Shown piece by piece: positions 16,405-60,000 of a DNA stretch of 64,000 nt. Each line of letters opens with the position of its first letter. Position 1 is the first letter of the stretch. The stretch is from the NCBI RefSeq assembly GCF_963853765.1, contig NC_088856.1, positions 52,328,001 through 52,392,000 of the forward strand, read 5' to 3'. The translations under genes were made by a program, and so were the position numbers. The stretch comes from Magallana gigas. Its lineage: Eukaryota. The notes under the pieces are model-generated. The model made no database searches. It was not told where the DNA came from and saw nothing but the letters and a program-made list of their open reading frames with translations.

Positions 16405-19400
16405 TTACCTAGAACCGCTCAGTCAGCGTACATGCGAGACTGACCGCGACTTTCCGCCGCATTGGTACTTATTTAAATAAAAAAACACGTGACACTCACT
16501 CGTTGTCGTATTCACAGATATAGAAGAGGCTGGTGGTGCACTGGACGTCCGACCACTGGCCGCTCTGACTGGACACCACCTCCACACAGTCCTCGTTATG
16601 GTAGTTGTCCGGGCCACCATTCAGCCAGTGGGGCCGGACTCTGATCAGAGTTCTTGCGTATGAATACACCCATTGTCCCTCCAGGAAAGAGTCCGTTACA
16701 CCGATATAGTAGGAGGCGCTCTGACCTTCGAAGAAAACAGAACACTNNNNNNNNNNNNNNNNNNNNNNNNNNNNNNNNNNNNNNNNNNNNNNNNNNNNNN
16801 NNNNNNNNNNNNNNNNNNNNNNNNNNNNNNNNNNNNNNNNNNNNNNNNNNNNNNNNNNNNNNNNNNNNNNNNNNNNNNNNNNNNNNNNNNNNNNNNNNNN
16901 NNNNNNNNNNNNNNNNNNNNNNNNNNNNNNNNGAGATTTTTTTCTAAATTGCAAAACACCCTGTAAGTAACACAGACTATGAAACACATGAATGTTATTA
17001 AGTGTCATTTTCAGTAACATGTTTAATTTGATAAAAATATATTTTATGTATTGATCAACGTAGAACTTAAAAAAAATGCTGCAATGTTTAAGTTGTTTCT
17101 ACATGAGTGAAGGAAGTGTAATCGTATCTGTCTACCTATCATAACCACCGGACTGGTCAGGAAGTATCATCGTATCTATTAACCTATCATTACCACCAGA
17201 CTGGTCAGGAAGTATCATCGTATCTATTAACCAATCATAACCACCAGACTGGTCAGGAAGTGTCATCGTATCTATCAACCTATCATTACCACCAGACTGG
17301 TCAGGAAGTGTAATCGTATCTATTAACCTATCATAACCACCAGACTGGTCAGGAAGTGTAATCGTATCTATTAACCTATCATAACCACCAGACTGGTCAG
17401 GAAGAGTCATCGTATCTATCAACCTATCATAACCACCACACTGGTCAGGAAGTGTAATCGTATCTATCAACCAATCATAACCACCAGACTGGTCAGGAAG
17501 TATAATCGTATCTATTAACCTATCATAACCACCAGACTGGTCAGGAAGTATAATCGTATCTATTAACCTATCATTACCACCGGACTGGTCAGGAAGTGTC
17601 ATCGTATCTATTAACCTATCATTACCACCGGACTGGTCAGGAAGTGTCATCGTATATATCAACCTATCATTACCACCAGACTGGTCAGGAAGTATAATCG
17701 TATATATCTACCTATCATTACCACCAGACTGGTCAGGAAGTGGAATCGTATCTATCAACCTATCATTACCACCAGACTGGTCAGGAAGTGTCATCGTATC
17801 TATCAACCTATCATTACCACCAGACTGGTCAGGAAGTGTCATCGTATCTATCAACCTATCATTACCACCAGACTGGTCAGGAAGTGTCATCGTATCTATT
17901 AACCTATCATTACCACCGGACTGGTCAGGAAGTGTAATCGTATCTATTAACCTATCATTACCACCAGACTGGTCAGGAAGTGTCATCGTATCTATCAACC
18001 TATCATAACCACCAGACTGGTCAGGAAGTGTCATCGTATCTATCAACCTATCATTACCACCAGACTGGTCAGGAAGTGTCATCGTATCTATCAACCAATC
18101 ATTACCACCGGACTGGTCAGGAAGTGTCATCGTATCTATCAATCTATCATTACCACCAGACTGGTCCGGAAGTGTCATCGTATCTATCAACCTATCATAA
18201 CCACCAGACTGGTCGGGAAGTGTAATCGTATCTATTAACCTATCATAACCACCGGACTGGTCAGGAAGTGTCATCGTATCTATCAACCTATCATTACCAC
18301 CAGACTGGTCCGGAAGTGTCATCGTATCTATCAACCTATCATTACCACCAGACTGGTCCGGAAGTGTCATCGTATCTATCGACCTATCATTACCACCACA
18401 CTGGTCAGGAAGTGTCATCGTATCTATCAACCAATCATAACCACCAGACTGGTCAGGAAGTATAATCGTATCTATTAACCTATCATAACCACCAGACTGG
18501 TCAGGAAGAGTCATCGTATCTATCAACCTATCATAACCACCAGACTGGTCAGGAAGTGTAATCGTATCTATTAACCTATCATAACCACCAGACTGGTCCG
18601 GAAGTGTCATCGTATCTATCAACATATCATTACCACCAGACTGGTCAGGAAGTGTAATCGTATCTATTAACCTATCATTACCACCGGACTGGTCGGGAAG
18701 TGTAATCGTATCTATTAACCTATCATAACCACCAGACTGGTCAGGAAGAGTCATCGTATCTATCAACCTATCATTACCACCAGACTGGTCCGGAAGTGTC
18801 ATCGTATCTATCAACCTATCATAACCACCAGATTGGTCCGGAAGTGTAATCGATCTATCAACCTATCATAACCACAAGACTGGTCAGGAAGTGTAATCGT
18901 ATATATCAACCTATCATTACCACCAGACTGGTCAGGAAGTGTGATCGTATCTATCAACCTATCATTACCACCAGACTGGTCAGGAAGTGTGATCGTATCT
19001 ATCAACCTATCATTACCACCAGACTGGTCAGGAAGTGTCATCGTATCTATCAACCTATCATTACCACCAGACTGGTCAGGAAGTGTCATCGTATCTATCA
19101 ACCTATCATTACCACCGGACTGGTCAGGAAGTGTCATCGTATCTATCAACCTATCATAACCACCAGACTGGTCAGGAAGTGTCATCATATCTATCAACCT
19201 ATCATTACCACCAGACTGGTCAGGAAGTGTCATCGTATATATCAACCTATCATAACCACCAGACTGGTCAGGAAGTGGAATCGTATATATCAACCTATCA
19301 TTACCACCAGACTGGTCAGGAAGTGTCATCGTATATATCAACCTATCATAACCACCAGACTGGTCAGGAAGTGGAATCGTATCTATCAACCTATCATAAC

Positions 19401-22077
19401 CACCAGACTGGTCAGGAAGTGTCATCATATCTATCTACCTATCATTACCACCAGACTGGTCAGGAAGTTCAGTTCATCTTGTGTCACTGGTTCAGCTAGC
19501 TTGCTGTTGAATGCACGACACAATGCCTACAAACAAAGCAACAAATTGTTAAGTAAAGAACAGCATAGCTATACCTGTAAAATATTAGAAGACACTTGGT
19601 GTTATTTATGGGCCAGGTGCCTGTCAAAAACTTATTTTCTTACTTGTTATGCATTTACAGATAAAACCTTCAAGAATCATAGTCACTCTGGTGTTAAAAG
19701 TCCCGTCGCATAGCTATTAAAGCACTGAATGGTTGACAAAACACGATAAACACGATAGATGTCACTGACATCTTCCCGTATTTCTTTAATCAAACTATGG
19801 ATATGATTGATGTAATCTATTTGATGTTATAACAACATACAAAATATAAATAGCAGATATGACAGGAAGTTATCTACAGGTACATATTAAATATTAAATC
19901 GATCGGCCATCATAAAACCTAAATGAACTCACAGATGCGTCGGCAAATGTCTGTTTAGTTTTGCTGAAGAAGTAACACTTGGAGTGGTGTCCAACCCAAC
20001 CATCAGTACAGGAAAACTCTGAAAAGGGGAAGAGGCTGGATGGTCAAGAAATTAACCAACTGATCTACCTTGAATTTTAATATATGATTTGTTTAGCTAT
20101 AAACTACATGTGTTATTTAGTACATAAAACATCCACACATGTTATCTTTTAAAATTTGGGTATTTTCCTATATTTTAATATACAGTTCTTCTTTTAAAGG
20201 AGATCGATACAGTCTAAATATGACCACGACCAACGATCTCTCTTAATAACGGCTTTTTACAAAACAAATACTTGTAGAGAGTTACACACACGTGTATGGG
20301 CAAGGGATGACCCTTAAAATCAGACGTAACATCCAATTGTATTGAAAACTAAAGCGATGAATTAGACATCCAGGTAAATAGACAAAGGATGAAATACACA
20401 TCCAGGTAAATAGACAAAGGATGAAATACACATCCAGGTAAATAGACAAAGGATGAAATAGACATCCAGGTATATAGACAAAGGATGAAATAGACATCCA
20501 GGTAAATAGACAAAGGATGAAATAGACATCCAGGTATATAGACAAAGGATGAAATACACATCCAGGTAAATAGACAAAGGATGAAATACACATCCAGGTA
20601 AATAGACAAAGGATGAAATAGACATCCAGGTATATAGACAAAGGATGAAATACACATCCAGGTAAATAGACAAAGGATGAAATACACATCCAGGTAAATA
20701 GACAAAGGATGAAATAGACATCCAGGTATATAGACAAAGGATGAAATAGACATCCAGGTATATAGACAAAGGATGAAATAGACATCCAGGTATATAGACA
20801 AAGGATGAAATAGACATCCAGGTATATAGACAAAAGGTGAAACAGACATATACATATAGTGAGTCACATCCACTTGAGTAGAAAATTAATGAAAAAGACA
20901 TCTGTGTACTTAGATAGCAGATCATATGATAGACATTTATGTATGTAAACAAGGGATGAAATAGACATCTATTTACCTGTATATAGACAGAAGATTAAAT
21001 AGACATCCATGTATATAGACAAGGGATGAAAGAAAAAAATATATAGTGAGTTACATACACGTGTATAGACAAAGATGCAGTAGACTTCAACATATATATA
21101 TACAATCATTATAGATGAAAATAGATGCGTATTGGGTTACATGTATTTATTTGTACATTTGTATCCAAACGAACCAGACGAAGCAGTTTAAAAGTCAGTA
21201 TGCTAAAAGTAGACATTGGATAAAACATTTCACAATGAATAAAGCTGTACAAACGTTTGATAAGTCAAAACCCTCAATCTTACCCGTTATAAGAATTTTT
21301 GTTTCCAGGGAGAGGGGTTCCGAGGGATATTGAGCTGGCGTGTTGGCGGGGAGAAGGGGGCGGGGTCAGAGACATTTTTTTGGTAATTTAATTGTTAAAA
21401 GTTAAGAAATTTGATTTTTCCAGAGGGGAGGACCCACCGATACCCCCCCCCCATTCCGCGCATGCGTAAATGAGTCGGATTTCAATTCACGATTAGATGA
21501 ATTACTGGGAGGAATGTTGTATTTATCAGAGATTCGGAGCTTTGACGTATCGTGTATACTTTTCCATTTACTAAATGACACTGCAATCAAGTATGTTTGT
21601 AGTTAGTACGTTTTGGAATGAGATTCCCACACACCATTTTACGCAGCCTAAATAGTAATTTAAATGGAAACAATGTGTTGAGCAGATGATATTGATATGG
21701 TTCCGACATTGCCACATCGATAATAAATAGCAATACACCTTCACAATTTTGTGGTGTAAAATGAAACGATAAAATATCAAGATCCCCAACGAAGAAAAAA
21801 AAGTAGCCTAATTTGAACAGATTTAATGTGTTTTATCTTTATTGTACTAGTCTAGAGTAGCATTTCTTAACAGAAAGTTGTACATTTTACATGTACATGT
21901 ATTACGAACAAGGACACCGAAAAGATAACCTCCACCGGAATCAAGTAGCATACGGGCAATGTTAAGGTTTTTATAATAAGTTGTTGAGAGAGATGTACAC
22001 ATTCACTGATACTTACGCTGAAGAAAGGAATGGTCAACCAAAGTTAGGACTAGAACAACTGAAAGCAGGGACCTCAT
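16405..22077 (-). CDS. Secreted C-type lectin, perlucin-like (CTL-3), ~154 aa
   Basis: Exons 22077-22017 (MRSLLSVVLVLTLVDHSFLQ), 20018-19933, 19526-19439 (ALCRAFNSKLAEPVTQDELNFLTSLVVMIG), 16725-16500 (YYIGVTD..EGQW...WLNGGPDNYHNEDCVE...WSDVQC...YICEY) and 16408-16405. Exon sizes 86/88 match the paralogs. Confidence 0.88.
16747..16932. other. Assembly gap (N run) in CTL-3 intron 3
   Basis: Run of 186 N. Confidence 1.
17114..19468 (-). repeat. 48-bp minisatellite (~49 copies) made of the CTL-3 exon 3 end plus its splice donor
   Basis: Unit on the minus strand: ACTTCCTGACCAGTCTGGTGGTAATGATAG|GTTGATAGATACGATGAC. The first copy overlaps exon 19526-19439. Confidence 0.95.
20365..20840. repeat. 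32-bp minisatellite, ~15 copies, with degenerate copies to ~21140
   Basis: Unit GACATCCAGGTA(A/T)ATAGACAAAGGATGAAATA; period 32 measured at 20461 and 20493. Confidence 0.95.
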
Positions 22078-24304
22078 TCCGACGATTCCTTATCGGTTAT
22101 CTACAGACGGTGAACAACCTTCAGTTTGCTCTATAGGACATCAAAAACTATCAACGACCCGCCACTGATTTAAATCGCACTGTCAAATATCTGTGTCCTT
22201 TTCGTGGGAATATTCTTATTTGTCTTCGTATGCCTTATTTCTTAACAAGCCCTTGTCCGAACCTTATATGTCAATATATATTTAAACTTGTAAAAGTTTT
22301 TAAAAAATTATATGTATATAAAAAGATAAATCATACAGCATAAAGTATTATGATGTTGCTAATTTAAACTTCTTAGTCAAAGATTTTTAACAAATTTATT
22401 TTTTTTCTAGTAAGTCTCGAATCTTGCATGTTAACCTGATTTAGCTCAGGTGAGCTATACAACCTACAGTTAAGTAGAACTTTACAATAGACCACCTTTT
22501 TCCTTCAAATCTTACGAACAAGTTTGTTTTGTGTGACTTATAAACATTACAAATTTACACCTATCGAAGAGAGGAACGGAACATCAGTATTTGTTATTAA
22601 TTTTATTTCAAGTATGAGAAACAAGCAAATAAACAAAATTGACAATCTTATTGAGATCAAAAAAATATTTAATACAACAGAGTCGAGAGAGAAGAGTCAA
22701 GATAACCAAAACAAATAGCTCTACTCTTTTACTCTTTAATCTTTCACAACTTTTGAAGCAATGGAATACAGCAAAAAAAAAGCCAGTTAACATTGAATCA
22801 AGTATTGCATTGATTAAAAAATGGTTTTAAAAAATTTGATTTTGATTATAGCATGTTTAATATAGCACTGCATATAATATCTTACCTGTTCAAACGTCAC
22901 AGTCGTAAAAGATGAACAAACTCAATTCTGATCTCAAGCATACTCTTATAAAAGGAGAAGATACATCGTAGTGAAATTGCGCTCAAAAGCGAGTCTGTCA
23001 TTGATTTTTAAAATTCTTTAGCCTTGAACCAGTCACATGTTACCTTTATTACCTTAAGTTTGTACCTGTGACATGGCAAAGCGATGTTGTAAAATGATGA
23101 AAATGTTAATCATTGCATTGATATCATTCAGAGAATAAAACAACAGCCCAAACACTTCTCCTTGTTCAATGTTCTGGATATTTCCATAAAATACATGAAA
23201 AAATGAAGTTCACAGAACTTTGCAATTTCATGCAACATAAATATACATCTGAATATAAAATCTAGAAAAATAAGACATATCTACTACTACCAAAATACAT
23301 GTAACATTTTCTAATTAGAAAAATACAATCTGTTTGATTAACCGGTAAAATTCTGCTGAGTTTATCTCAGAATACAGATAAAAGATAATGCTTATTGTGC
23401 ACAAGTGTTTTGAAAAATTAATTTCAATGAATGTATGTGCTTGAAAAAAATCATTCCAATATTTAAAAATTTCAATTTATTATTTGAAAACTTGCTAAGT
23501 TTGAATGTAGATCTTAACTAAAATGGGGGGGGGGGGGGGGGGGAAATCGATCAAATTTAAACTAATTCTTACTAGGCAGTTTATTCCTATAAACAAATAA
23601 TATGTCATTGACAAATGATTTCTGAAGACTGTTAATTTATATCAAAAGCTTGATGGTTAGTACTCCTTAATACAGCTTTGAGTTGTGTACTTTGTTAAAC
23701 AGGTTCTCCTGCTAAGCTTCAATGGACGACTGAAAACTTAATGAATGATCTTTTTTGAATTCTAAATTAAAATTAAAGTAAGTTAACCACTAACTGATGC
23801 TTCAAATTAAATCAAATTACAAATTATTTTTAAAACAATTAACGGTACACACTGTTTGTTTTTAAATTGAATGGGAAAGTTTTAACAACAAAGAAAGGAA
23901 ATTAATATTGAGAAAAGTAATTACATATAGTATATTTGTATGTTAATTATTAGAACTTGTTTCTAATCCTACATTAATAAATTGGCAATGAAAATTCCAA
24001 ATCTAAACTAGCAAAAAAGTTCATAAAACTGGTGTGGAAATAACTGTTTAGTACTCTTTAATTCATTACTTAACATGAAATATGATTAAGGTCGGACAAC
24101 ACGTTCCTCAATTTAATATAACATTTTCAAGGAATTTGTTAATGGTTTACTACTACTCTGAAAAGCTTTCTTGCAAAAATTAGGATACCTTACCAGGCAT
24201 TTCTGCAAAATACTAGAGAATGTAATTTCTTAAATAATCTTCTTGAAAAAATACTTGAATTCTGATATAAAAATAAATAAATAAAACAGCACAGTGAAAT
24301 TCGC

Positions 24305-24396
24305 TATATTGGGCCGGGCTTTGAACTCACAACCTCTAGAACCTACACTCCTGGCAGTGAGCAGCCACGGCTCTAACCACTCGGCCATCTAGGCAT
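24305..24396 (-). mobile_element. tRNA-derived SINE head / tRNA pseudogene
   Basis: Minus strand gatgcctagaTGGCCGAGTGGttagagcc...gtgaGTTCAAAGCcc has Pol III A- and B-box-like motifs. No clean cloverleaf. Confidence 0.55.
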
Positions 24397-29500: not shown

Positions 29501-32500
29501 TTTTAATTATATTTAATTTTTTCACAATCTTATTAAAATTAGACTGTTAAGACCACATAAATTTAATATTTAGATTCTCATCCTGATTTGCAAAAAATTT
29601 GGGGTGGGTGGGTGGGCTTTATTCTTTATTTTTTTTTAAATCATCTTTTTGACCATTCATGTTCTAGAAATAATAACTGCTCTATCTTTATCAAATTGTT
29701 AATGCTAATATGAGTACAAAAACCAATATGCAGTCTTTCAATTCCATTTTATTTCCACTTAACTGTTATTGCATGAAGACATTAGTATCCTTATAACAAG
29801 CATGACTGGAATCAAACGATGATCCACATGTTAAGCAGCCGTTAAAATGTTCTGAATTTTTTGGTACACCAACTTAAATTTTTTTCCTGAATTTTTTTTT
29901 GTACAATTTTTAAAAAATAACATACATCGGGGAGGGCAACTTTCAGAGGGGATGAGACTCTAAAGACAATTTTATGTGGCCTTATATTGCTTCTTGTTTA
30001 TCAACATCACTAGCAACAACAGATAAACTAAGATAATGTGAAAGGTCTAGTTTTAATTAGATTGATTTTCCCAAGCGTATGTGATGTTAATGTTTGGGTG
30101 CTTTATATGAATCAATGTAGCTCACTGATAACAGCTTATTAAATTTCATCAAATCTATCATCAAAATGGTCACACTTTGTTGTGTACATACCCTGAGTTA
30201 CACATCATCTTGTCTTTTGGGTTTGTATCAGCAGAAGATGCCAATTTAAAGGACACTTCTCCTTCATAGGACTTATTGGCCAAAAACGTTTTGGCCCCTA
30301 CAACCATTCATCAAAAGAAAATCATGAGTATTCAGTAGGGCCAAAAAAAATTTTATGTATTGGTTTACAAGTCAAAATTTCAAAATTTGGAAAAAGGGGA
30401 ATAACCCAATACAGTAAAACACGCTTATAAAAAAGTCCCAAGGACGAGCAATTTTACTTCGTTATAAGCATAATTTGTTATATCCATCATGTTTACTACA
30501 TGTAATAAAGTCAGGGGGAATGGAACTCACTTTGCAATAAGCGTAATTCATCATAAATGTGTTCGCTATAGCCGTGTTTTACTGTATATGAAAATTAAGG
30601 TTTTCCCCTTTTCTTAATAACTCAAATAATTCAACTCTGCCTGCAATCAATACATGAATATTTTTGGGCCAAATGAAATTTGGTTTGAATATATTTCTGA
30701 ACCACAATTATCTGTTCTTACCAGCAACTTGGTAGCGCTTTGGCCCCATCCATCTGTTATTTTCACTGTCCTTCAACATGTCTCCATAGTAACCGTAAGC
30801 CAACATGGAGGAGCTGTAGCGAAGAAACTGGTCCCCACTGTAGATTGAGCAGACGTCAATAGCTGTAGAGTCACCTGTCATAAACAAACATCCTCTCTTA
30901 TTGCTTTCATTCTACTTCGTGTACCAACAATTACTGTAAACCAACTTTTATTCACATGCAAGAAATTTTTGCGAGGTTAGCGAGAGCCTTGTTGTTGAGA
31001 ATATTTCTCACCGTGAACCAATCCTTTGTCTATAGTTTTTATAACAATACAGGTCTGGATAAGGCTTGGTCGTGACCATTAGTCGTCGCGAACCAGTTTA
31101 TCGGCAGTTAATTGCGAAATAAAGTCACCGAGACTAAAAATTGGTTTACAGTTTCATCTTTTTTAACAAACTACTTCTAAATGATGACGGATTCAACTAT
31201 TTCAACTATCGTACATTTTGATGAAAAGATTGTCAAACCTATTTAAGGACAAACTTTTTGTCATAAAACGGGGGAAGGGAGAGATTGTGTCCTTTGTGAG
31301 GGTAGAAGACAGATGTCAGACAGTGGAGGTCCTCTATAACCATAATCTTACAGAATCTGGTGTAATTTAGCAATTACATTTTATGGTCTTTGAACTCTTG
31401 ACCCTTGACTGATTCATGTGAGTGCACCATTCATTACCTATAATGAAGTGTATAGCTGACATGTATAGCCCACCCATAATGATGTGTGTAGCTGACATGT
31501 ATAGCCCAACAATAATGAAGTGTATAGCTGACATGTAAAGCCCACCCATAATGAAGTGTGTAGCTGATATGTAAAGCCCGCCCATAATGATGTGTGTAGC
31601 TGACATGTATAGCCCACCCATAATGAATGGTATAGCTGACATGTATAGCCTCCTACAACAATGTGTATAGCTGACATGTATAGCCCACCCATAATGATAT
31701 GTGTAGCTGACATGTATAACCTCCTACAACAATGTGTATAGCTGACACGTATTGCCCACCTAAAAATGATGTGTATAGGTGACATGTATAGCACATATAA
31801 TTATAACGATGTGTATAGCTGACATGTATAGCCCACTCATAATGAAGTGTATAGCTGACATTTATAGCCCAACCATAATGAAGTGTATAGCTGACTTGTA
31901 TAGCCCACCCATAATGATGTGTATAGCTGACATGTATAGCCCACATATTCCATACTTTACTGAGATCACCAATACCTTACCTATAATCATGTGTATAGCT
32001 GATGTCATCGGGTCATTTATCCCTGTTGTGGAGAAGCAGATAGCATCTGTGGACCCTGAAATAAACCAACTAGTCTATATCAGACTATGGTAAACATACT
32101 CTTCGATGAAAAATATAAACTGCTAACATCAACTTATATTAAAGCATTGAATCATAATTTTTTGAAGTATACAGTCTCATAACTGCAGCGGTGTGTGCAT
32201 ATAAATTGAGGAAAGCACGTTAGAGTGTTATAAAAATTTGTATGCAAGCATCGCTGCAGTTATGAGACTATACTTCAAAAAATCATGATTAAATGCTTAT
32301 ATTTACATTATTTTAACTTCATGCCTTGTCTGAAAATGTGATTTATACCTTAAAATTACTATCTTATCCTAAGGGTAAGTTCATATTAATGGAAGAGCCA
32401 CAGCAACAGCCGCAAGCGTGAACTTTGATTTTCGCTTGTGACGTTGCAGTTAACAGCGTTCAACGTTTGTGACGTCATAATAAAACTCGTCATTTTAACC

Positions 32501-38848: not shown

Positions 38849-41800
38849 TCAAACCATTCTGAGTGTGAGGGCTTTGTAAATGAATTTTCCTAAATTACAC
38901 AATTCTTTAATATTGTTAACACTTAATAACTGTATTAATTTGTACATGGATGGTTTACACCAGTAATACTTTTTTATGAGCTTTGATCGTAATGCTAAGT
39001 ACATTGGACATACAAGTATAAAATGATATTCGTCTTCAATGTCTGTTATACAAGTTTTACAAAATCTTTTGTCTCTTGGTATATTTTTATGTCGACCTGT
39101 TTCAATAAGCAAATTATGTGAGGACAACCTCATTTTGGAAATACATTTTTTATACAACCTTGGTATTGATTTTTCTAAATAGTATTGTAAGCAAAAATTA
39201 TCAACTAAGTGCTTGTAAATAAAACATTTTGTTTCTATTTGCATCTTGCCATGCAGCGTTTGAATAAAGTTGTCTTTAAGTCTTTTCTGAATAATTGGTA
39301 AACAAATACGACTGTTTAAATTATTTTGACCATTCCACATGTAGCCAAGTCCCAGATTATATAATTGGTCCTTAATAAATTTTGCCCAGCTTTGATAATT
39401 TTGCTTTTCGTTTTCACAAATACAATATGACCAGCCATAAGCAGCTCTTAATATACAATTTTCTGTCTGTAATAATTTAAACCAGAACTTAAACATTCGA
39501 TATATACGAATAAGATATAAGGGTAGACGCCCAGTCTCGAAATATAACATAGTTGTATTAGTATTTTTCCGGACACCAAGCACAAAGCGTAAAAACTCAA
39601 GGTGGACCTTTTCAATATCTTGTCCCTTGTGGGAACCCCAAACTTCACATCCATAATTTAAAATGCTACACACATAGGTATCAAAAACAGAAAACAAAGT
39701 ACAATGGTTTAAATAAAGCTGATTAATTGTTGATTTGAGAGCAAATATGGCTTTGCGACCTTGTGCCGCTAATTGTTTTTGAGTGGTAAAAAATTTACCG
39801 TTATAATTGAACATAACACCTAGATAAACAAAATGGTCCACAATTTCTAAATTTTCACCATTATAAAGCCATTTCTCGTTGGTGCGGTAATTCCCACCAT
39901 TTCTAAAAATAACCACTTTAGTTTTAGATACATTTACATCAAGGTTCCATTCATTTGTATAGAACTGTAAAATATTCAACATGCTCTGTAGCTCATCAAT
40001 TGATTCAGAAAACAATACCATATCATCAGCATACATAAGAAGATAAAGACTTAGCAATTGCAGGTCAGTGGGGGCAGTCCCTTTTCCTATAAATTCATTT
40101 TCAAGATCATTAACATATAATACAAACAACATGGGAGACAACACTTCTCCTTGTAAAAGACCAACATGATTTTCAAAGAAATTAGAAATATGACCAGAAG
40201 ATTTAACACACGTTCTAATTCTGGAATACATTGAACGAATTACTGTAAGTAACTTTCCCTGTATACCATAATACTTTAATTTTCTGTACAATTTCTCCCT
40301 ATTGATAGAGTCAAAGGCCTTCTTATAATCAACAAAACAACAATAAAACCGTTTTTTAGTTTGCAGCGCTTGTGAAACCAGGCAATGAAGTGCAAAAATT
40401 GCTTCTGTAGTACCTAACATAGGTTGAAAACCAAACTGTGCATCTGTGACAATACTATTGGAAGATGCCCATAATATTAGTCTACGGTTCAATATTGAGG
40501 TAAACAATTTACAAAAGCAGCTGATAAGACTTATGCCTCGGTAATTGTTGGGGTCATCTGGGTCACCCTTTTTAAAAACAGGAACAATAACTGCATCTGA
40601 CCATTGTGTAGGAAAATAACCGGATGATAATATACGATTAAAAATACTATGTAAACATGGCATAAGTATACCCTTGAATTCTATAAAATATTCATTCAAA
40701 ATATAATCAAGACCATGTGATTTGTCTCTTTTGAGATTGTCTATAGCATCTGATATTTCTTTTACATTAATTTCAGTGTCTAATTCTTCAAACACGGTAG
40801 TTCCAGTGTCCACCGGGGGATCGTTATCTGTATCGGTAGTAAATGTAGATAAATCTTCAAAATGTTTTCGGAATAGGTCCAGTTCAATTGATGTATGTTT
40901 AGGTTTTCTTTTCCGGAAATGTTTGTAGAATATTTTTGGGTTGTCTTTACGGAGATGATCAAGAAGGTTGCCTTCTTTTCGTAAATACTGGCGTTTAAGT
41001 TTTGCTTCTGAACGTTTGTAATTCCTCTTAGCTTCGATTAAGTTCAAATGGTTAACTCTGCTTTTTGTATTATTAAAACGAGTGAGTGCTGATCGATATA
41101 TCCTGTACTCTTTTCGGAGATCTTCATTAAACCAAGGTTTGTCAGGTGACTTCACACATGAATGAGGTCTCGCTCCACCTGAGTTTTGAACTGGGTTTGG
41201 ATACCTTTTGTTTATTTCGAAAAAGGGTCGCATAAGGTCACTCAGGCGTGATGTAAACAAATCGACCGATTCGTCAATACTAGACTGGGAATCACACAGG
41301 GTATTCTGGAAACATGCCACAAGGTCATCAGAATTCTCTATTAAAGCTGACTGGGCTTGATGAATCATGTCCTGGTTCCAGACGAATTTCGAAGACAATT
41401 GGTTTTCACTTTCATTAAGCACAGTTGAATTGCTAATAATTTCTATTTTAGACTTCAGTCTGACATGAAGAGGTGCATGGTCAGAGTACATAGTAAAATT
41501 TGCTACAATGAACTGATCAATTTTTGAAAATACATCAGGTGTAGTTATAACATAATCCACAACGCTCATGCCCCTTGGGCCAACAAATGTATAATCTTTA
41601 TCCATACCCAAATTATGACGCCCATTTAAAATTCTTAAACCACTACTTTTACATAATGATAATAACTTGTTACCCAAATCATTGATGACCATGTCAGGAT
41701 TAGTTCTACTTTGAAGACGTGTGTCTAAACCATAAAATAAAACTTCACTTAAATCTCTCAAAACATCATCATGTAGTATATCATACATTATAAAATCATT

Positions 41801-42271
41801 TGCATTTGCAGTTCTTGCATTAGTGTCACCAATCAACATCACTTTTCCAAAAGTCAAATATTTAACAATTTGGTTTTCTAGCTCACTAAATATATCACAA
41901 TCATAAGCTTGGTAAAAAGTTGAACTGCTTGGTGGTATATACACACATGCTAAATACAAATCTTCAGAACTATCTAATAGACATTTATCAAGCTTAAGCC
42001 ATATTATAGTGTCACACATATTTTCAAGAAAAGATACATAATGCTTAAGTTTTTCACGAATTAGAATAACACAACCACCTCCTTGTTTTGATTTTGAGCG
42101 CATTCTTGGAAAAACAAAGCTATGAAATCCTTCCACGTCAATTGAGAAATTATTTTCTATCCAACATTCCGTAAGGAGAACGATGTCATATGAGAGAATG
42201 TAACACTGGAATTTTTTATCACTGAATTTACTGGCAAAACCCCCGTTTATGTTCCAGCTGATTATCTTCAC
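38849..42271 (-). CDS. LINE ORF2: APE endonuclease + reverse transcriptase + C-terminal CCHC-like motif (1140 codons, uninterrupted)
   Basis: KIISWNING, LLTECW, MLIGDTNART, SVVDY, SDHAPL (APE); NNYRGISL, QFGF, FVDYKKAFDS, GLLQGEVLSP, LMYADD (RT); CKTC..DIEDEYHFILVC. Confidence 0.97.
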   Translation of the reverse strand: MKIISWNINGGFASKFSDKKFQCYILSYDIVLLTECWIENNFSIDVEGFHSFVFPRMRSKSKQGGGCVILIREKLKHYVSFLENMCDTIIWLKLDKCLLDSSEDLYLACVYIPPSSSTFYQAYDCDIFSELENQIVKYLTFGKVMLIGDTNARTANANDFIMYDILHDDVLRDLSEVLFYGLDTRLQSRTNPDMVINDLGNKLLSLCKSSGLRILNGRHNLGMDKDYTFVGPRGMSVVDYVITTPDVFSKIDQFIVANFTMYSDHAPLHVRLKSKIEIISNSTVLNESENQLSSKFVWNQDMIHQAQSALIENSDDLVACFQNTLCDSQSSIDESVDLFTSRLSDLMRPFFEINKRYPNPVQNSGGARPHSCVKSPDKPWFNEDLRKEYRIYRSALTRFNNTKSRVNHLNLIEAKRNYKRSEAKLKRQYLRKEGNLLDHLRKDNPKIFYKHFRKRKPKHTSIELDLFRKHFEDLSTFTTDTDNDPPVDTGTTVFEELDTEINVKEISDAIDNLKRDKSHGLDYILNEYFIEFKGILMPCLHSIFNRILSSGYFPTQWSDAVIVPVFKKGDPDDPNNYRGISLISCFCKLFTSILNRRLILWASSNSIVTDAQFGFQPMLGTTEAIFALHCLVSQALQTKKRFYCCFVDYKKAFDSINREKLYRKLKYYGIQGKLLTVIRSMYSRIRTCVKSSGHISNFFENHVGLLQGEVLSPMLFVLYVNDLENEFIGKGTAPTDLQLLSLYLLMYADDMVLFSESIDELQSMLNILQFYTNEWNLDVNVSKTKVVIFRNGGNYRTNEKWLYNGENLEIVDHFVYLGVMFNYNGKFFTTQKQLAAQGRKAIFALKSTINQLYLNHCTLFSVFDTYVCSILNYGCEVWGSHKGQDIEKVHLEFLRFVLGVRKNTNTTMLYFETGRLPLYLIRIYRMFKFWFKLLQTENCILRAAYGWSYCICENEKQNYQSWAKFIKDQLYNLGLGYMWNGQNNLNSRICLPIIQKRLKDNFIQTLHGKMQIETKCFIYKHLVDNFCLQYYLEKSIPRLYKKCISKMRLSSHNLLIETGRHKNIPRDKRFCKTCITDIEDEYHFILVCPMYLALRSKLIKKYYWCKPSMYKLIQLLSVNNIKELCNLGKFIYKALTLRMV

Positions 42272-46160: not shown

Positions 46161-46558
46161 CTACACATATTGTATTTTCTTCACTTTACCTGTCCAGTTA
46201 TCAGCCACAAAGAGGTTGTCTCTGGTGTCCACACATAAACCGTATGGATACCGTAAATGACAGTTGTCAATGTAGCGGAGGAACTGTCCATCCTGATCCA
46301 GGATGTGGATACGGGCGTTGTCATAGGTACCGTCTACTGTCAGGATGCGACCCTGGCTGTCTGTTGTGATGCCGCGTGGAAGGAATGATTCCTTGGTAGT
46401 AGAGGGAGGACCAGTGTAGGTAAACCGGAGTTTCCCGGCCTGATTGACCACCACTACTGCACGGGCTCCACGGTCTGACACACAGATATCTAGGTTCCTG
46501 TTCTCACTGATGTATTTATAGTCACCAGATGAATAGAGAGGTTGTCCTTTGTCGTCGT

Positions 46559-46594
<36 letters not shown>

Positions 46595-47819
46595 ACACAA
46601 CTTTTGTTTGTTTATCATCATCATCACTGTCCATGACAACCAGGAGGTCACCAGAGGAGGTACTACAGACACCGAGAGGTCTCCACCCCCGTAGTCTGAT
46701 CACTGTCTTTATCTTTTTATTCTTCACTATGTTCACAGTTCTATCATTGTTATCAGTATAAACTAGATCCCCACGCCTTGTCACTGCTATGTCCTCTGGA
46801 TCGCTCCCTGACTTGGTTTTGACTGACTTCACTAGTTCCCCACGGAGGTTGTACAGTCTCATGATGTTGTCATCACACGTCCACATCTCCTCATCACTCA
46901 GACAGGACACACCGTGTAATCCTCTACACTCGGTGTTTATCTGTGTGATGATCCGTGGTACATCAATGAGCGGTCTGTCCAGGGGAGAGGACTCAGCACC
47001 GGGAGATTCCATGGTGTAGCCATGTTCTTCTGTTTTGATAGATGACGCTGACAGAGAACCAAACTGTTGATAAAGCTGTTCTTTGTTGATCTTCTGAGGG
47101 GTAAAACTTGGTAAGGACACTGTGAGTTTAGGAGGCACTCTTCTGAATTCATCATTCCTGGATTTGTAGGCAGAGACACGGCTGACATCATTGGAGTCCA
47201 GTAAAGTCTTCAGTTGAGTAATGGTCTGTGTGATTTCAGAAATAGTGTGTTTAATTTCATCTTCCTGTTTGTCTAAGACAGCCAGGTGTTTGGTGTCCGT
47301 TTCCTCCACATTAGATTTCATGTTTCTGATAATGGTGTTTATTTCTCTGTGCAAGTCTTCTCCATGTTTGTCGATTTCTGTTGTTAATTTCTGGGAGTTT
47401 TCATTCAGAGCAGATTTTTGGACTTGGTTAATGGATGCAATCTCTTGATATTTAGGATAAATGGATTTCTCTAGTTCTTGTAAATCTTTTTGAATGATTT
47501 CTTTCTTGCTTTCAATGTTTTTAGTTATTTCAATAAATGTATGGCCACTGTGTTCTTCAGAGGAAGCACATGTTGCACAAATAGGAATGTCACATTGTAC
47601 ACAGTAAAGTACACATAATTTTGTGGAATGTTTTGGACATTTAGGAGTAGATCCTCTCTTTTCAATTGGCAGCACTTTGTGTTCTTTGGATTGATCAGAG
47701 AGATGGTCCTTCTCACAAGCTTTACACAGATATTTGTTACAAATGACACAGTATATAGGGGGGACCGGGGTTTCACAGAGATGACACCGTAACACATCCT
47801 GGGCCCAGCGTTTGTCCAT
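46161..47819 (-). CDS. RING-less TRIM-like protein: B-box1, B-box2, coiled coil, NHL beta-propeller (552 aa, single coding exon)
   Basis: CHLCE...[17 protein letters not shown]; CPKH...[21 protein letters not shown]; heptad-rich middle; NHL repeats [52 protein letters not shown] splice acceptor (ttttttcag|) at ~47845 implies a 5'UTR intron. Confidence 0.93.
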
Positions 47820-48975: not shown

Positions 48976-49007
48976 GCAATACTTGCAATGACCAATTCTT
49001 GCCTAGA

Positions 49008-50118: not shown

Positions 50119-50172
50119 TTCTCGGGCCTTTCCGGCTAGTGTTTTTCCGACACTAGCGGAAAGGCCCGAGAA
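50119..50172. mobile_element. Collapsed hairpin remnant of the 4066 MITE family
   Basis: TTCTCGGGCCTTTCCGGCTAGTG-tttttccga-CACTAGCGGAAAGGCCCGAGAA. Confidence 0.7.
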
Positions 50173-51047
50173 GTAACTTCTATAATATACAGACCAGTCT
50201 ACAGACAGACCACAGGACCAAGTCCGTTTTAATATCAATTTCAATACTTTACTTATAGTTACGTTGAAATTAATGTTAAAACGGGCTTGACCCCCCGGAA
50301 AATCAATATTAATAACTTCACACATGCAGTAAAGGGGGAGAGAGGGTCCGGATCCCCCCCCCCCCGGGGGACAGTTTAATTTTATTAAATATATATAATA
50401 AAGTCTCCAAAATATGTCTCGGACCCCCCCCCCCCCCCTACCACCACCACCGACAAATATAATTATCCATCGACCCCCCCCCCCCAGAAAAAGTTATGGA
50501 TCTGCACAGGCTGTTGAAAATAAATGCTAAAAAGTTAATCGTCTGTCTCAGATGTACTGACGCCAGTATGGTGGTCCGATGGTGCCGCATCTTCGCGCTT
50601 CGCCGTCGCATCTTCGCACTTTCGCCGTCGCACCTTCGCACTTTTGCCTTCGCAACTTCGCACTCTCGCACCTCGACTTAAAGGCGAAAGTGCGGGTCTG
50701 TACTGATTCGTATATCGGAGCTTACGAGCGGTCTGAAAAAAATTCGGACGGACTAGAGCTACAGACCTGCTGCTATGGTGTTCATATGGAGAAAAATCAC
50801 ACTATTAAACAGATCTAACTGTTCTCGATTAAAAAGAAACACTATTAATATTATCAATATTTTAGTCATTTTTTTTAAATAAGCGCATAACCTAGAAAAT
50901 TACATTCAAAATAGCGCGGCAAAATGCCTTATTGACATTTGGAAGTCCTCTAGATTTATACAACAATGTTCCGAGACCATTTGTTTACAGTCATGGCCGA
51001 TGTTCAAACCAGCAACAGGCACTAGTGGATCTATTAAAGTATAAAAG

Positions 51048-54000: not shown

Positions 54001-57000
54001 GTACAGGGATTTTACTATATGTTATTATCGCGGAGCGGAGAACTGGTACAGTTAATCGTAAAACTTGGCAACTTAGGGGCGTGCTAAAAAGCACAAAAAC
54101 AAGATGTTTTTGAGTTCTTAATAATGATAAAATCTAGCAGCTGGATAAACAAGGAAATCACCATTTAAAGTACGTGTGTCAAGTTTTATCCTAAAATATC
54201 AAGAAACAAGGAAATACGAAAAGAAAATTTTAGCTGATAATTGGTACAGTGCCAGTAGAGAAAACAAACTTGTAATAAGATATTTTGAGGTTGGCCTGAA
54301 TTTTATGAACAAAACACTTGTGTTCTTGGATTAAAAAAATATTATTTAGTATATTGTAATGTAAATAACAGTAAATAAAATGGTATTAAATTCTTTTCTC
54401 TGAGGCATATACATGTACCTTCACAGACTAATGGATAGCCAAGTTTTTACCTTTATTTTCCTTGTTCACAACTTAATTATAATTGTCCAGCTCATATTCT
54501 TTTCAGAATCTCAAGTTCAAACAGTTTTATTTGTAACTTGAGCTTTGAATGAGTACAATGTGCCAGAAGAAGTAAAACTTCTGAAAATTCTGAACACCAA
54601 GAGACCGTTGGAGCAGTTCTCAAGAATTTTAATACTGGTACTTAATTGTCTGAAGATAAGGGGGAAGAAATGACAGTTCGAAATTTCTATAGAAGATTTA
54701 GGAGAACATTCGTCACAATTTAATAAAAGTTATTAAATGCTCAATTATGTATCAAAATCAATATAGGAATAGTTGTAGATCATCCATTGTTGAGATGTTC
54801 TAGTAAACCTAGGTGTGTATGTGTACCCTCTCCTCAAAAGATCATTTTAAACAGAGCGTTTTATAAATCGACAAGATTACCCATCCTCACCTAATGAATC
54901 AGGGGGTGGTAGGATTTAAAATTCCTCTGCATGGAATTGAATGTCACTAATAGATCCAAGATTGTCACATTTAATTTATGAGTCTATAATGTCAATGTAC
55001 ATGATGAAGTAGATGTAATATATAACTATATAGATCTTTGATTGCCACATTGAATTTATAAAACTTTCTCTAAGTAATGCAGGAGGGCCATTGAAATACT
55101 TTTGAACTTGCACTCAAATAAATCAATGATTTGAGAACCATATGTGCATTACAATACAGCATGTCAAGTTCTTATTTAAAACAGCCTGTCACAATAAATT
55201 CTTAAGCTCAATACCTACAGAATAGATCTGCTACATAGTCTATGGCCTACATTTTTGCAAAACTTAGATATTTAACAATTTCCTTGACAAATGTCTTCTT
55301 TTGAAGCCATGGGTCAACAGAATTTTGGATATATAATTATGTCTACTCATCGTATGGTCTATTGGAAAATTTAATTTATATTTCTATAATTTTTATAAGA
55401 AAAAATGTTTTCTCCATAAATCCTTGCCTTTATAGTTTTATTTGAGAATGAATTTTGTAAACAGATTGAGGCACATAAGCTGTTATAAAGCTGCTAATGG
55501 CCAACTTAGGTTTGAGAAATTTCATGAGGCTCACAAAAACCTCGTACATGTAGTTTCAAATATTTCTCATACCAAAACAGTCTATTACCAGTACGTCTTA
55601 ATTTGCTATATTAATTGTCACCAAGAGAACCATTTTATCATTATGATATATCAATCAAGAATTAAAGCCATCACAGGTTTATTATATAATTGATGTGCTT
55701 GCTTGTTTAAATTTACAACTTTTTCATAAAAATTGTTTTCCAGGCAGTGGAATGCGGCCATGATGACTGTGTGAAGCTATTAATAGATCACAACGCCCAT
55801 GTTGATGCTGTGGATAAGTCTGGGAACTCGGGTCTCCACCTCGCGGTCCTATACAACCATCCAAAAATCGTCAAACTCCTGACATCCAAAGGGGCCAATG
55901 TCAACATAAAAAACAAGGTAACAATGTAGAACAATGTTTATAACCTACAGAGGTGCTTTCTGCCAAAAATGCTAGCCAGCAGAATACAGAATGAAATGTA
56001 AAACGTTTACAGTATTCTAATTATTCAGATACTTGTATTGCTCATTAGCTCAGCAATTTCAAGAAGCTCCAAATTCACTTACTGAGCTGTAATATTCAGG
56101 TTTCAGTGTTAATGACAGACACTGTTCCTCAGACTTAATACTGTAAACCAACTTTTTTTCGCGTGCGAGAAATTTTCGCGAGGTTCCCAAGAGCCTCGTT
56201 GTCACGAATATTTGTCGCCAGGAATTTTTTTTACGTATGGTTGTTATAAGAAAATACGGGTCTGGAAAAGGCTTGGTCATGAACATTAGTCGTCGTGAAC
56301 CAGTTTATTGAAGTAAATCATGTTCTCATTTTCAGACTGAGGAGGGCTTTGCTCCCTTGCACATGTCTATACAGCTGAAGCGAGATGAAATCACCAGGGC
56401 TCTCCTCATAGCCAAAGCCAACCCTGATGTACAGGATAACCTGGGCAGGTAAGAACAGGAAAGAGTAAAGAATGTGGACAAGTAAAACCTTGAATTTCTA
56501 GTGAATACCCGGACAGGTAAAAACATTGAAATTCTAGTGAATACCCGGACAGGTAAAAACATTGAAATTCTGGTGAATTCATGGGCAGGTAAAAACATTG
56601 AAATTCTGGTGAATTCATGAACAGGTAAAAACATTGAAATTCTAGTTAATACATGGGCAGGTAAAAACAATTAAAGAAATTAAAGGTAATACATGGGCAG
56701 GTAAAAACATTAAAATTCTATTTAATACCTGAACAGGTAAAAACATTGAAATTCTAGTTAATACATGGGCAGGTAAAAACATTGAAATTCTAGTGAATTC
56801 ATGGGCAGGTAAAAACATTGAAATTCTAGTTAATACATGGGCAGGTAAAAACATTGAAATTCAAGTTAATACATGGGCAGGTAAAAACATTGAAATTCTA
56901 GTTAATACATGGGCAGGTAAAAACATTGAAATTCAAGTTAATACATGGGCAGGTAAAAACATTGAAATTCTAGTTAATATATGGGCAGGTAAAAACATTG

Positions 57001-60000
57001 AAATTCTAGTTAATACATGGGCAGGTAAAAACAATTAAAGAAATTAAAGGGAATACATGGGCAGAAACAAAAAGTAAATTTCTCGTAAATTCCTGGGCAG
57101 GTAAGAACTTTAAGATTAAAGGGATTACCTGGGCAGCTAAAGTAAATCTTGTAGAACTTACAAGGATGACTTTTATACCTGATAGGTGAAAAATAAGGTA
57201 TCACTACCTGGCACTAGGTAAAATAAGATGTATGCTAGTTAAAGTTATTACCAACTCATATACCTTGCTAATTTAGATACAGTCACTGTGGAACTTTGAA
57301 GGTAGAGGTTGATATGTATATTTTTCTGGCATAAGATAATAGTAATTAAAAATTGAAAAGTCCATTGAATACAAAACCATGCCATGTGAATAATGGAGTT
57401 CTGAGAATTTGAATTATCTTTAGTAAATGTATGCATAGCATTAGATAGTAGAAGGAATTTGTATTACTAGAAGAAGTTACAGCAATATATTTGAATTCCA
57501 CATATTTTTGGCTTGTAAAGTGTGTCGAAAGCTACGGCAGTTATAACACTGTAATGCACACAAGGCACATGTACTTGAAGGTTATAATGACGAGTTTTAT
57601 TATGACGTCACAAACGTTAAACGCTGTAAACTGCAACGTCACAAGCGAAAATTTAAGTTCACACTTGTGGCTGTTACAGTGGCCCTTCCATTAATATGAA
57701 CTTACCCTTAGGATAAGATAGGAATTTTAAGGTATACTGTAAATCACATTTGCATATAAATTTTCATAACGCACTAACGCGCATTACTCAATTTGTATGC
57801 ACACACTGCTGCAGTAATGAGACTGTATATTTCAAAAAATCATGATTCAATGCTATAGTATGTAGAGTAATTGTCAGTGACTTTAATGATGTGCTCTCTC
57901 GTCCTTCAGAACCCCGCTGATGATTGCCTGTTACGACGGTGCCATCACGCCAATCAGAATGCTGCTACAGTTCAACGCACAGACCATCATCAAGGACAAG
58001 AAAGGTCAGGAAACCCGGCCATATTGATTCGAGGGACTTAATCTTGGGCTGATAACTGTTGAACTTTAATTTTTCATTAAGACAGCTTACTACAGTTCTG
58101 TAGCATTAACTGTAATGTAAACTTCTGGTTTGCTGAGTGTGCTTGATTTAAAAAAAAAATCTTTTGTAGGATGAATAGCAACATTTACTTAACTGTTTTG
58201 TATAGTTGACAGCATTTCTGAAGATATCACAGCATTGTTTACTCTGTTCTCTCTAGTTTACAGCATTGTTTAATACTGCGCTGAATGGTTTACAATATTG
58301 TTAGATATTGCTCTGTAGGGTTTTGAGCATTATATATTACAGTACTCTATAGAATGTATATTAACATTGTTCACCTTTGAACTGTAGGTTCACGTCATCG
58401 TTTTTCCTTGTTTTATTTGGTTCACAGTATTGTGTGATATTCTTCTGCATGGTTTACTGTTAACAGCACTTATTTACTTCTGCTCTGCAGGGTTTGCAGC
58501 ACTATTTACATCTATTCTGTAGGGTTTACATCATTATTTTCTTTGTTTTGTAGTGTTTACAGCATTATTTACTTTGTTATGTAGAGCATTGTTTATTTCT
58601 TCTCTGTAGGGTTTACTGCATTGTTAACTTCTTTGTAGGGTTTACAGCATTGTAAACTTCTTCTCTGTGGGGTTTACAGCATTATTTACTCCTGCTATGT
58701 AGGGTTTATAGCATTGTTTACTTCTGCTATGTAGGGTTTACAGCACTATTTATGTCTGCTATGTAGGGTTTACAGCATTGTTTAATACTTTTCAGTAGGA
58801 TTTACTACAATGTTTACATCTGTTGTGTAGGGTTTACAGCAGAAGACATGGCCAACATGACAGGACAGTACGCTGCCTCCCAGCTCCTGAGTGACCACAG
58901 CATGAAGCTGCGCCGATCTGCAGGGGGCAGCAGTCTGGCTGGGAGCATCACCCCCAGGGACACCCCCCGGGGATCAGTAGGACCATCCAGTGCCTCCACC
59001 ACCCCCAGAGATCCCTCATTGACCAACATGTTGCCAGTGGACAACAACGACAGAGGTTAGATACCTGTATCCATGACGATTGTCTTTTAAGAATAAATCA
59101 TGTATCATCTCGCTGTATGATTAGAATATTTTGATTTTTCTTTTTACTAAAGTAAGATTACTGCATATTTAATGAGAGAAGTTCAGTAGTTGACAAATTT
59201 TTAAACAAATTGTTTACTTATTTAGGAAACTCTTCACAAATGTCTATTGATTCTTTGTCAGTTTACTTATTTAGGAAACTCTTCACTAATTTTTATTTAT
59301 TCTTTGTCAGATATATAATGTAAACCGACTTTTATTATCATTCAAGAGAATTTTGAAAAAATTGTCAGGGCCAAGTTGTTTTGTTTATTTCTTGCCACAA
59401 ACCCAGTCTTGGTCACAAAAATTGATTAGGCGAAAAAAAGTTTATCACTTATCTAGTTAAATCTAAAATAAATTCATGGCAGATTAAGGTTTGTTAACAG
59501 TATTATGATGATAAATTCTGATTTTGACAGCGTATGACTCTGAGGAGGAGACGACCCAGAGCCGTGTGTCTCACAGTCAACAGGACGACTCCTGGGCTGA
59601 CGACAGCGTCAGTCTGGGCCCCGAGGGCAAGAAAAAGGTAACCAGTCCACAGGGGAACCAGTTCTCTCTTTATGTGTATATTGCCTTCATGTGAACAAGA
59701 TTATACTTCCAAATGGCATCATGATGTTTAATTCGTTCAAAATGGTGGTTTGTTTTTTTATTGTAAATATTAATGGTGGATAGACCATATCTAAATTTTA
59801 TCTTTTGTTGTGGGATTCATTATTAAAGTTGAACATGAGGCAAATTAAACTTATATAGTCTAGTTCTTTCATGCATGACTACAGTTGTGCATGATTTCTT
59901 TTTTCATTCAGTTTGTACATGTTGTAAGAATCATAATATTTATTGCAGATTTTAAATGACAGCATTAGCTTGATACAAAATTTTCAATTTTACTCAGTTA

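Follow-up and report, generated by a model that had tools for sequence, protein, structure and literature searches.

Locus organization and tandem arrays

The window analyzed here is a 64,000-nucleotide stretch of the Magallana gigas genome (contig NC_088856.1, positions 52,328,001 to 52,392,000 of the forward strand; coordinates below are those of the window), in which four long minisatellites lie across exon–intron boundaries of protein-coding genes. Pfam matches of the flanking coding sequences (Lectin_C, DAGK_cat, and Ank) bear out the three kinds of host gene proposed in an earlier sequence-only reading of this DNA. Specifically, there are two C-type lectin genes on the minus strand (Lectin_C, E = 1.6e-10 and 2e-5), a ceramide-kinase (CERK)-like gene on the minus strand (DAGK_cat, 2.1e-6 in the exons neighbouring the array-bearing exon), and an ankyrin-repeat gene on the plus strand (Ank, 4.9e-15 for exon 3 and 1.1e-4 for exon 4).

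Tandem Repeats Finder (TRF) called seven long arrays across the window, at 13322, 17111, 20351, 31436, 56484, 58459, and 61703. Four of them, designated arrays A to D, are confirmed as junction-spanning minisatellites of the “mirage” or human F7 intron 7 (IVS7) type. They are all arranged head-to-tail within the genes, with unrelated units of 48, 36, 36, and 32 bp, 12–49 copies, and 75–93% matches. When the units were read in gene orientation and in phase, the exon-proximal monomer of each array was found to span the exon–intron boundary, the exons being placed by reading frame, Pfam, and RNA joints. As the sequence-only reading had claimed, each unit consists of a piece of the exon (19 nt in A, ~24–26 nt in B, ~16 nt in C, and 11 nt in D) with its own splice signal, a GT donor in arrays A, B, and C and an AG acceptor in array D. 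The signal is repeated in the intronic copies, with GT in 48/48 (A), 7/14 (B), and 17/18 (C), and AG in ~10/14 (D). The arrays account for roughly half to nearly 90% of their host introns, which upholds the proposal that these introns grew by tandem decoy splice sites.

Array A (17111–19468, minus strand; 48 bp × 49.1 with 93% matches by TRF) starts at a C-type lectin exon (19449–19526, minus strand; ALCRAFNSKLAEPVTQDELNFLTSLV) whose last base, 19449, is followed by the authentic donor GTG|GTAATG. The 48-bp unit, present 49 times, is composed of 19 nt of the lectin exon tail, a GTAATG or GTTATG donor, and 23 nt of intron. The exon ends with ..AACTTCCTGACCAGTCTGGTG|GTAATGATAGG, and each unit repeats CTTCCTGACCAGTCTGGTG|GT(A/T)ATGATAGG. 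All of the 48 decoy donors have GT, and 16 of them match the authentic junction fully over 31 nt. The array occupies most of its intron. The last lectin exon, which gave a Lectin_C match, is at 16499–16744 (minus strand) and is adjoined by a run of N at 16747–16932. For the array-A intron, the acceptor may be at approximately 16721/16720 (cag|AGCGCC, giving ..NFLTSLV|SASYYIGVTD); otherwise it is hidden in the masked stretch.

Array B was called by TRF at 31436–31944 (36 bp × 14.1), and degenerate copies run on to the CERK-like exon at 31981–32055 (minus strand; ..GSTDAICFSTTGINDPMTSAIHMII-G; last base 31981). The whole array on the minus strand is therefore placed at 31436–31980, with ~14 units and an exon-adjacent degenerate copy, and each unit contains ~24–26 nt of the exon tail and ~10 nt of intron. 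The exon ends with ..CAGCTATACACATGATTATAG|GTAAGG, and the units read ..GTCAGCTATACACATCATTATGG|GTGGGC. The authentic donor TAG|GTAAGG agrees with the consensus at 7/9 positions, and the interior decoys, mostly TGG|GTGGGC, at 4/9. Most decoys are thus weak, and only 7 of the 14 keep GT. The copy farthest from the exon retains TTATAG|GTAATG.

The ankyrin-repeat gene has two arrays in consecutive introns. Exon 4 (56336–56448, plus strand; TEEGFAPLHMSIQLKRDEITRALLIAKANPDVQDNLG-R, ending ..DNLG-R; donor CAG|GTAAGA), exon 5 (57910–58004, plus strand; TPLMIACYDGAITPIRMLLQFNAQTIIKDKK, reading TPLMIACYDG...KDKK-G), and exon 6 (58831–59055, plus strand; G-FTAEDMANMTGQ..., beginning FTAEDMANM) form one continuous reading frame; exon 4 is placed by RNA joints and its Ank match, and exon 6 by the RNA joints on its two sides. 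Array C was called at 56484–57108 (36 bp × 17.1) with degenerate copies running back to the exon at 56448, so that it covers 56449–57150 on the plus strand with ~18 units. Each unit carries ~16 nt of the exon-4 tail and the donor. The exon ends with ..GGATAACCTGGGCAG|GTAAGAAC (donor GTAAGA), the interior units read ..TTAATACATGGGCAG|GTAAAAAC, and 17 of the 18 decoys are CAG|GTAAAA or GTAAGA. Two distal copies, ..TTCCTGGGCAG|GTAAGAAC and GGGATTACCTGGGCAG|CTAAAG, are nearer to the exon sequence than the interior copies. Array C makes up about half of the 1461-nt intron 4.

Array D, the acceptor array, was called at 58459–58841 (32 bp × 12.3) with older copies at 58256–58323, and it extends over 58220–58830 on the plus strand with ~12–15 units, about three quarters of the 826-nt intron 5. 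The unit comprises 21 nt of the intron tail (pyrimidine tract and TGTAG) and 11 nt of the exon-6 head. The units read ..CTGCTATGTAG|GGTTTACAGCA and the exon starts with GGTTTACAGCAGAAGAC; AG is kept in ~10 decoy acceptors.

No coding flank was found at the other two minisatellites, and on the present evidence they are not junction arrays. Every unit of array E (20351–20849, plus strand; 32 bp × 15.6) contains CCAG|GTAAAT, a good donor-like word that is not on the strand of the lectin gene but on the other one; it could be a relic, the edge of an untranslated or antisense exon, or a chance occurrence. Array F (13322–14454; 26 bp × 43.6) lies between the two lectin genes, and its plus-strand end (14440–14470) abuts TTG|GTAAGT, a near-perfect donor word at a place with no evident gene. 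The seventh array, at 61703–62599 (166 bp, 5.5 copies; alternative period 487), is satellite-like and unlike the junction repeats. The share of junction arrays among the long minisatellites, given as four of six in the sequence-only reading, is therefore corrected to 4/7, or 4/6 when the 166-bp array is left aside.

Such a share could in principle arise by coincidence, if minisatellites seed anywhere in short introns and a fair share of them straddle a boundary by chance. Some of the host introns would indeed be short if their arrays were discounted (~200 nt for ankyrin intron 5), and we estimate that a 40-bp duplication in such an intron would be sizeably likely to touch an edge. With 60–100 junctions in 64 kb, however, the probability that at least four of six arrays straddle a junction is ~3e-5 to 2e-4, a value that is post hoc for this window.

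Splicing and decoy-site use

Two contig sets from RNA libraries (X1 and X8), raw poly-A reads (X21), and a DNA-like contig set (X15) were mapped to 55600–59800, the region of the ankyrin-repeat gene. GT..AG joints were observed at 55917|56336, 56448|57910, 58004|58831, and 59055|59531. The joint 56448|57910 removes 1461 nt including the entire array C, and the joint 58004|58831 removes 826 nt including the entire array D. Each joint is present in a single contig from each of X1 and X8 with a depth of ~230–330, and in 6–13 raw reads with 4–10 distinct starts (10 reads for 56448|57910 and 6 for 58004|58831). The mate orientation is consistent with a plus-strand ankyrin transcript. The exon-proximal copies are thus the sites used in arrays C and D, as the sequence-only reading had supposed for all four arrays; for arrays A and B, use of the exon-proximal site is predicted from reading frame and homology. 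No joint at a decoy site was present among the best 15 of the 34 joints at the ankyrin locus, although low-level use would be compatible with the read depth. In the mRNA, the joined exon edges are each present once, and none of the units of array C or D is exonized. Since the exon-proximal copy is spliced, the other copies are intronic and the protein is unaltered. That the arrays run only in the direction of the intron is partly a matter of definition: after duplication of a segment made of exon tail and intron head, the limit of the intron is set by the copy that is spliced, not by the DNA.

The consequences of decoy use were deduced from the reading frames. Read-through past the exon of array A meets a stop after 5 codons, and stops are present in every unit. 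In array C, an in-frame TAA directly follows the exon (..GGC AGG TAA). In array D, inclusion of one or two extra units causes a frameshift and that of three leads to TAG. Decoy use would therefore hit a stop or shift the frame in three of the four arrays. In array B, the frame is open for 38 codons and the unit corresponds to 12 codons; the first decoys, which are in frame, could therefore yield in-frame insertions, but they are weak (GTGGGC).

The RNA data also bear on whether the arrays are real. The short-read contigs break within array C, and the check by reads covered the ankyrin gene and not array A; both points would favour assembly errors. Against this, the lengths skipped by the RNA joints agree to the nucleotide with those in the assembly (1461 and 826 nt). 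Array D and the two edges of array C are also covered, at 97–99% identity, by independent contigs of other samples. The arrays of the ankyrin gene are therefore not assembly artefacts. An artefact, which the sequence-only reading had named as an outcome that would overturn it, is largely refuted for arrays C and D. In one RNA-library contig, array D is shorter by precisely one 32-nt unit (58471–58502), and a CTT insertion at the ankyrin locus is common to three runs; short-read contigs of this kind cannot size the arrays.

Recurrence in the genome

Three tandem copies of a splice motif at minisatellite-like spacing were counted in the whole genome, with the reversed pattern as a control. For donors, AGGTAAG gave 1263 matches (102 for the control), CAGGTAAGT gave 113 (1) at 27 distinct places with ~22 unit families, AAGGTAAGT gave 15 (1) in 10 arrays, and GAGGTAAGT gave 20 (2) at 7 distinct places. 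The match counts are inflated by long arrays and paralogous copies, so that robust figures come solely from counting distinct places. The perfect donor 9-mers together occupy 44 distinct places compared with 4 matches of the reversed controls. As a single word, CAGGTAAGT occurs 5646 times and its reverse 3590 times, a ratio of 1.57, and under a null at this ratio the 44 places against 4 control matches have p ~2e-6. The excess of donor arrays is ~10-fold or more above the single-copy frequency. For acceptors, TTTTCAGGT gave 2 matches (23 for the control) and TTTCAGG gave 91 (163). A dispersed repeat of ~50 bp (TTTCAGGTGAAAGACCT...), probably borne by a mobile element, occurs in short tandem runs at many loci (e.g. 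G000:C1:36369418, C3:20738630, C5:6185086, and C8:28719762) and swells the acceptor-motif counts.

The ten AAGGTAAGT arrays were inspected with 1.5-kb flanks. In 6 of the 10, the first donor closes an open frame whose tail recurs in the unit. In particular, the flanking exon matched PEPCK_GTP at L023 (2.5e-11) and the exportin-7 TPR at L034 (4.2e-11), and the array at L031 follows a 255-nt frame with a kinase-like GKGAFAKVY; the start at an exon donor is less sure at L035, L025, and L022. No coding flank was found at L021, L024, and L030, where an untranslated exon would escape this test, and the array of L026/L028 extends past the fetched locus. The open frames are longer upstream of the first donor than downstream of the array (Wilcoxon p = 0.02, n = 9), which gives modest support, and the Pfam matches on the flanking exons are more telling than this asymmetry. 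At several places, the same donor-bearing minisatellite recurs approximately every 30–50 kb (G000:C1:5368017-5463241; C7:5032311-5138671; C4:56108537-56356719; C8:46763984-46813945). Because of this regular recurrence, junction arrays seem to be copied when genes are duplicated in tandem, and they can be older than the duplication.

A random sample of 20 pieces of 10 kb (200 kb) contained five TRF arrays with at least 7 copies, two of which are in-frame coding repeats and three non-coding. Two of the three non-coding arrays begin at donors of EF-hand exons on the minus strand. They are located at L009:690-1733 (49 bp × 21; exon end ..KAADAN-G|GTAGGG) and L009:8183-8969 (40 bp × 19.5; exon end ..GKGYLDYE-|GTATAT), with 18 and 16 nt of exon per unit, respectively. 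The EF-hand_7 matches of the exons (1.4e-10 and 2.8e-17) extend to the last residue. Both arrays belong to one gene, and they therefore constitute one independent, though unselected, observation. The third non-coding array, in L017, has no exon beside it. When the window and the random sample are combined, 6 of 9 non-coding arrays are at junctions. The two coding minisatellites, L011:5123-5360 and L019:1580-1903, have units of 33 bp and 15 bp, respectively, are Gly/Tyr/Gln-rich, and lie directly after an acceptor; these repeats are exonic and form a class distinct from the junction arrays.

These results support the view that the pattern is recurrent and donor-enriched genome-wide, and junction arrays appear to be a common class across the oyster genome. 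The enrichment foreseen in the sequence-only reading thus stands for donors (44 places against 4 control matches, and 2 of 3 in the random sample), but was not seen for acceptors with the two motifs used. The donor excess despite a single-word ratio of only 1.57, together with the reappearance of the pattern in the random sample, makes the chance seeding considered above for the window quite unlikely.

Origin of the arrays

The genome, 564 Mb in ten chromosome-size contigs, was searched with the units of arrays A–D. Each unit matches solely its own array, with one exception, another array at C6:19150480-19150716, which unit C matches at 72%. A transposon-borne repeat or dispersed satellite was considered and rejected, as no unit was found at many unrelated loci in this search. 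The reverse direction, in which exon ends were recruited from older arrays, is countered by the exon tails, which encode conserved domain residues: the exon-4 tail next to array C lies inside the Ank domain (profile match over residues 4–35 of the exon's 37), and the tails of the PEPCK, XPO7, and EF-hand exons elsewhere in the genome are likewise within conserved domains by Pfam. This position indicates that the exon is the older part, from which the array was copied. Taken as one, an origin by assembly error, transposon, or recruitment from older arrays is very unlikely. The edge copies of arrays B and C retain the authentic junction sequence and the interior copies have derived changes in common. 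A homogenized interior with ancestral edge copies is the usual mark of concerted evolution or unequal exchange.

The single-locus units and the conserved exon tails support an origin of the arrays by local amplification of junction segments, and the following course can be proposed. A 32–48-bp segment straddling an exon–intron boundary of a conserved gene would be duplicated in tandem, and slippage or unequal exchange would then expand it to 12–49 copies. As each unit contains the last or first 11–26 nt of the exon and the splice signal, the growth would create an intronic ladder of decoy splice sites. The spliceosome would take the copy adjoining the exon body and leave the remaining copies in the intron, and the exon-proximal choice along with nonsense-mediated decay may make the arrays harmless. 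We consider this account as a whole, namely locus-specific minisatellites that arose from a junction-straddling duplication, were amplified, and are spliced at the exon-proximal copy, to be highly probable.

Several points weigh against this account. Random seeding combined with tolerance gives at most a proportionate number of junction arrays; tolerance alone therefore yields no excess, and in this respect the account is incomplete. No acceptor excess over the reversed control was found genome-wide for the two crude motifs, TTTTCAGGT and TTTCAGG, which is weak evidence of absence because exact words describe acceptors poorly. The match counts are swollen as noted, and the 200-kb sample is small, with both of its positive arrays within one gene. 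With 6–13 junction reads, decoy use below roughly 10–20% is possible in the ankyrin gene. For arrays A and B, splice-site use was read from frame and homology instead of RNA, the array-A intron has its acceptor at the edge of the masked stretch or within it, and an in-frame insertion isoform is possible for array B.

The excess needs a further cause: a mutational bias at exon edges, a longer persistence of junction arrays, or selection. The preponderance of donors over acceptors may reflect a filter, since decoy acceptors upstream of the true one may be more harmful, but it could also simply reflect the weakness of the acceptor test. One candidate cause is a mutational hot spot, in which exon–intron boundaries, especially 5′ splice sites, are favoured for the birth or growth of tandem duplications. 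Polymerase pausing with replication conflict is a possible basis, as are recombination intermediates stalling where the homology of the haplotypes drops between a conserved exon and a highly polymorphic intron. The size of the donor excess and the 6 of 9 non-coding arrays at junctions are in line with a hot spot. Amphioxus, like the oyster, is extremely polymorphic. It is also the only other animal in which such arrays have been called frequent (PMC3087553). The absence of an excess for the acceptor motifs is contrary to a pure boundary effect unless selection removes acceptor arrays, and arrays E and F show that non-junction arrays grow large too. We regard a hot spot as a possibility worth keeping in mind but not the probable case, and it would supplement the duplication-and-amplification account with a cause, not replace it.

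Selection for a function was also considered. Ladders of 5′ splice sites might recruit the U1 small nuclear ribonucleoprotein (U1 snRNP) and thereby protect AT-rich introns from premature polyadenylation or enhance transcription, or decoy use coupled to nonsense-mediated decay might tune expression. The donor specificity of the excess would fit such a function, as would the decoys of arrays A and C, which are still as strong as the authentic site. The decoys of array B have decayed, with GT in only 7/14 and mostly GTGGGC, the host genes are unrelated, and there is no decoy junction among the RNA joints listed. A selected function is accordingly improbable in our estimation.

Comparison with known systems

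The kind of array described here has already been published, contrary to the suggestion in the sequence-only reading that it might be an undescribed class. In the human F7 gene, the first 37-bp monomer of the variable number of tandem repeats (VNTR) in intron 7 spans the boundary of exon 7, and further human cases are known in IFI6 (6-16), CBS intron 13, LMNB2, and PDGFA (PMC1557585). Mutagenesis of F7 showed that the most upstream of identical 5′ sites is selected (PMC1557585). The oyster arrays share with this type the boundary-spanning first monomer and the identical pseudo-sites that come after the authentic 5′ splice site. In the F7 type, only the site farthest upstream is normally used, and exon-proximal use was read from the RNA joints for oyster arrays C and D. 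The human arrays are isolated occurrences, mostly with low copy numbers (5–9 in F7, with 4 nt of exon), whereas the oyster arrays have 11–26 nt of exon per unit and up to 49 copies, include one acceptor array, and number four within 42 kb.

In amphioxus, minisatellite-like duplications of both 5′ and 3′ boundaries were named “mirages” and were found in the genes for Adh3, troponin C, globins BflGb6/9, and PGBD5 (PMC3087553, PMC3902484). Normal splicing and concerted evolution were reported for them, a general phenomenon in cephalochordates was suggested, and somatic instability was described for the Adh3 mirage (PMC3087553, PMC3902484). The oyster arrays are similar in that exon–intron boundaries on both sides are duplicated, splicing is normal despite the repeated signals (RNA for arrays C and D), and the interior copies evolve in concert, the edge copies being left out of this (PMC3087553). 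They differ in their host, a bivalve of a different phylum, and in units shorter than the 150–160 bp of the globin mirages. The genome-wide count against a control and the donor bias, both in oyster, go beyond the amphioxus accounts. By this comparison, the oyster arrays can be regarded as counterparts of the amphioxus mirages and the human F7 IVS7-type VNTR.

A kinship to intron gain at AG|GT sites had also been proposed. Intron creation by internal tandem duplication with AG|GT is the subject of the Rogers model, Gao and Lynch 2009, and Zhuo et al. 2007, all as cited in PMC3087553. As in that model, an intragenic tandem duplication multiplies splice signals in the oyster arrays. Unlike in intron gain, neither a new intron nor a new exon is formed; an intron already present becomes longer, and the mRNA retains the exon tail once. 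The mRNA junctions of arrays C and D showed no new intron splitting a continuous exon with duplicated exon on both sides. As no new intron was created, the link is only conceptual. Variable internal repeats at exon–intron boundaries can create introns in human paralogs (PMC2812944). The VNTR in ABCA7 intron 18 is described as intronic, near a donor, and linked with splicing (PMC5954066), and in these respects it resembles the oyster arrays.

A literature search, which was not exhaustive, found neither a genome-wide count of such arrays nor a description of them in oysters or any other mollusc. Two aspects may be new, namely how abundant the arrays are in a mollusc and the bias towards donors. 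A single junction-spanning minisatellite, that of F7, has served as a model of choice among identical 5′ splice sites, and amphioxus mirages have been put forward as a route to intron change. If junction arrays are common in the genome, isolated cases become a data set in which conserved genes, such as those for lectins, CERK, PEPCK, exportin-7, and EF-hand proteins, carry arrays with as many as 49 equal donors. With such a data set, one could test by which rules splice sites are chosen, what decoys cost, what nonsense-mediated decay contributes, and whether exon edges are prone to mutation. A broader and more speculative reading is that 5′ splice sites in the oyster, and perhaps in further marine invertebrates with very high polymorphism such as amphioxus, are genuine hot spots where minisatellites arise or persist, with on the order of a thousand introns (by rough scaling) built largely from copies of their own donor through a transcription, splicing, or recombination process or through selection for U1 snRNP binding. 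We put it forward tentatively and would sooner expect it to fail than to hold; if true, it would mean a lineage-specific route of intron growth and a natural library of 10–50 identical competing splice sites. In practical terms, junction arrays can mislead gene predictors and are likely to be length-polymorphic markers at exon edges.

Other features of the window

The second C-type lectin gene, a paralog of the gene with array A, is located at 11175–12583. Between the CERK-like gene and a TRIM-like gene, an unbroken frame of 1140 amino acids (38849–42271, minus strand) encodes an endonuclease/exonuclease/phosphatase domain and a reverse transcriptase (RVT_1, 5e-35), and it is a retrotransposon of the long interspersed nuclear element (LINE) type. 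The TRIM-like gene (46161–47819, minus strand) is apparently intronless, with a single frame of 552 amino acids that contains a B-box zinc finger and NHL repeats. In the ankyrin-repeat gene, two intronic stretches, 56023–56304 in intron 3 and 57433–57855 in intron 4, showed a contig depth of thousands to tens of thousands in every run, and reads link opposite strands at 57735/57854 in the latter. The two stretches have the appearance of dispersed repeats at high copy number, and the arms of the second seem inverted, as in a miniature inverted-repeat transposable element (MITE).

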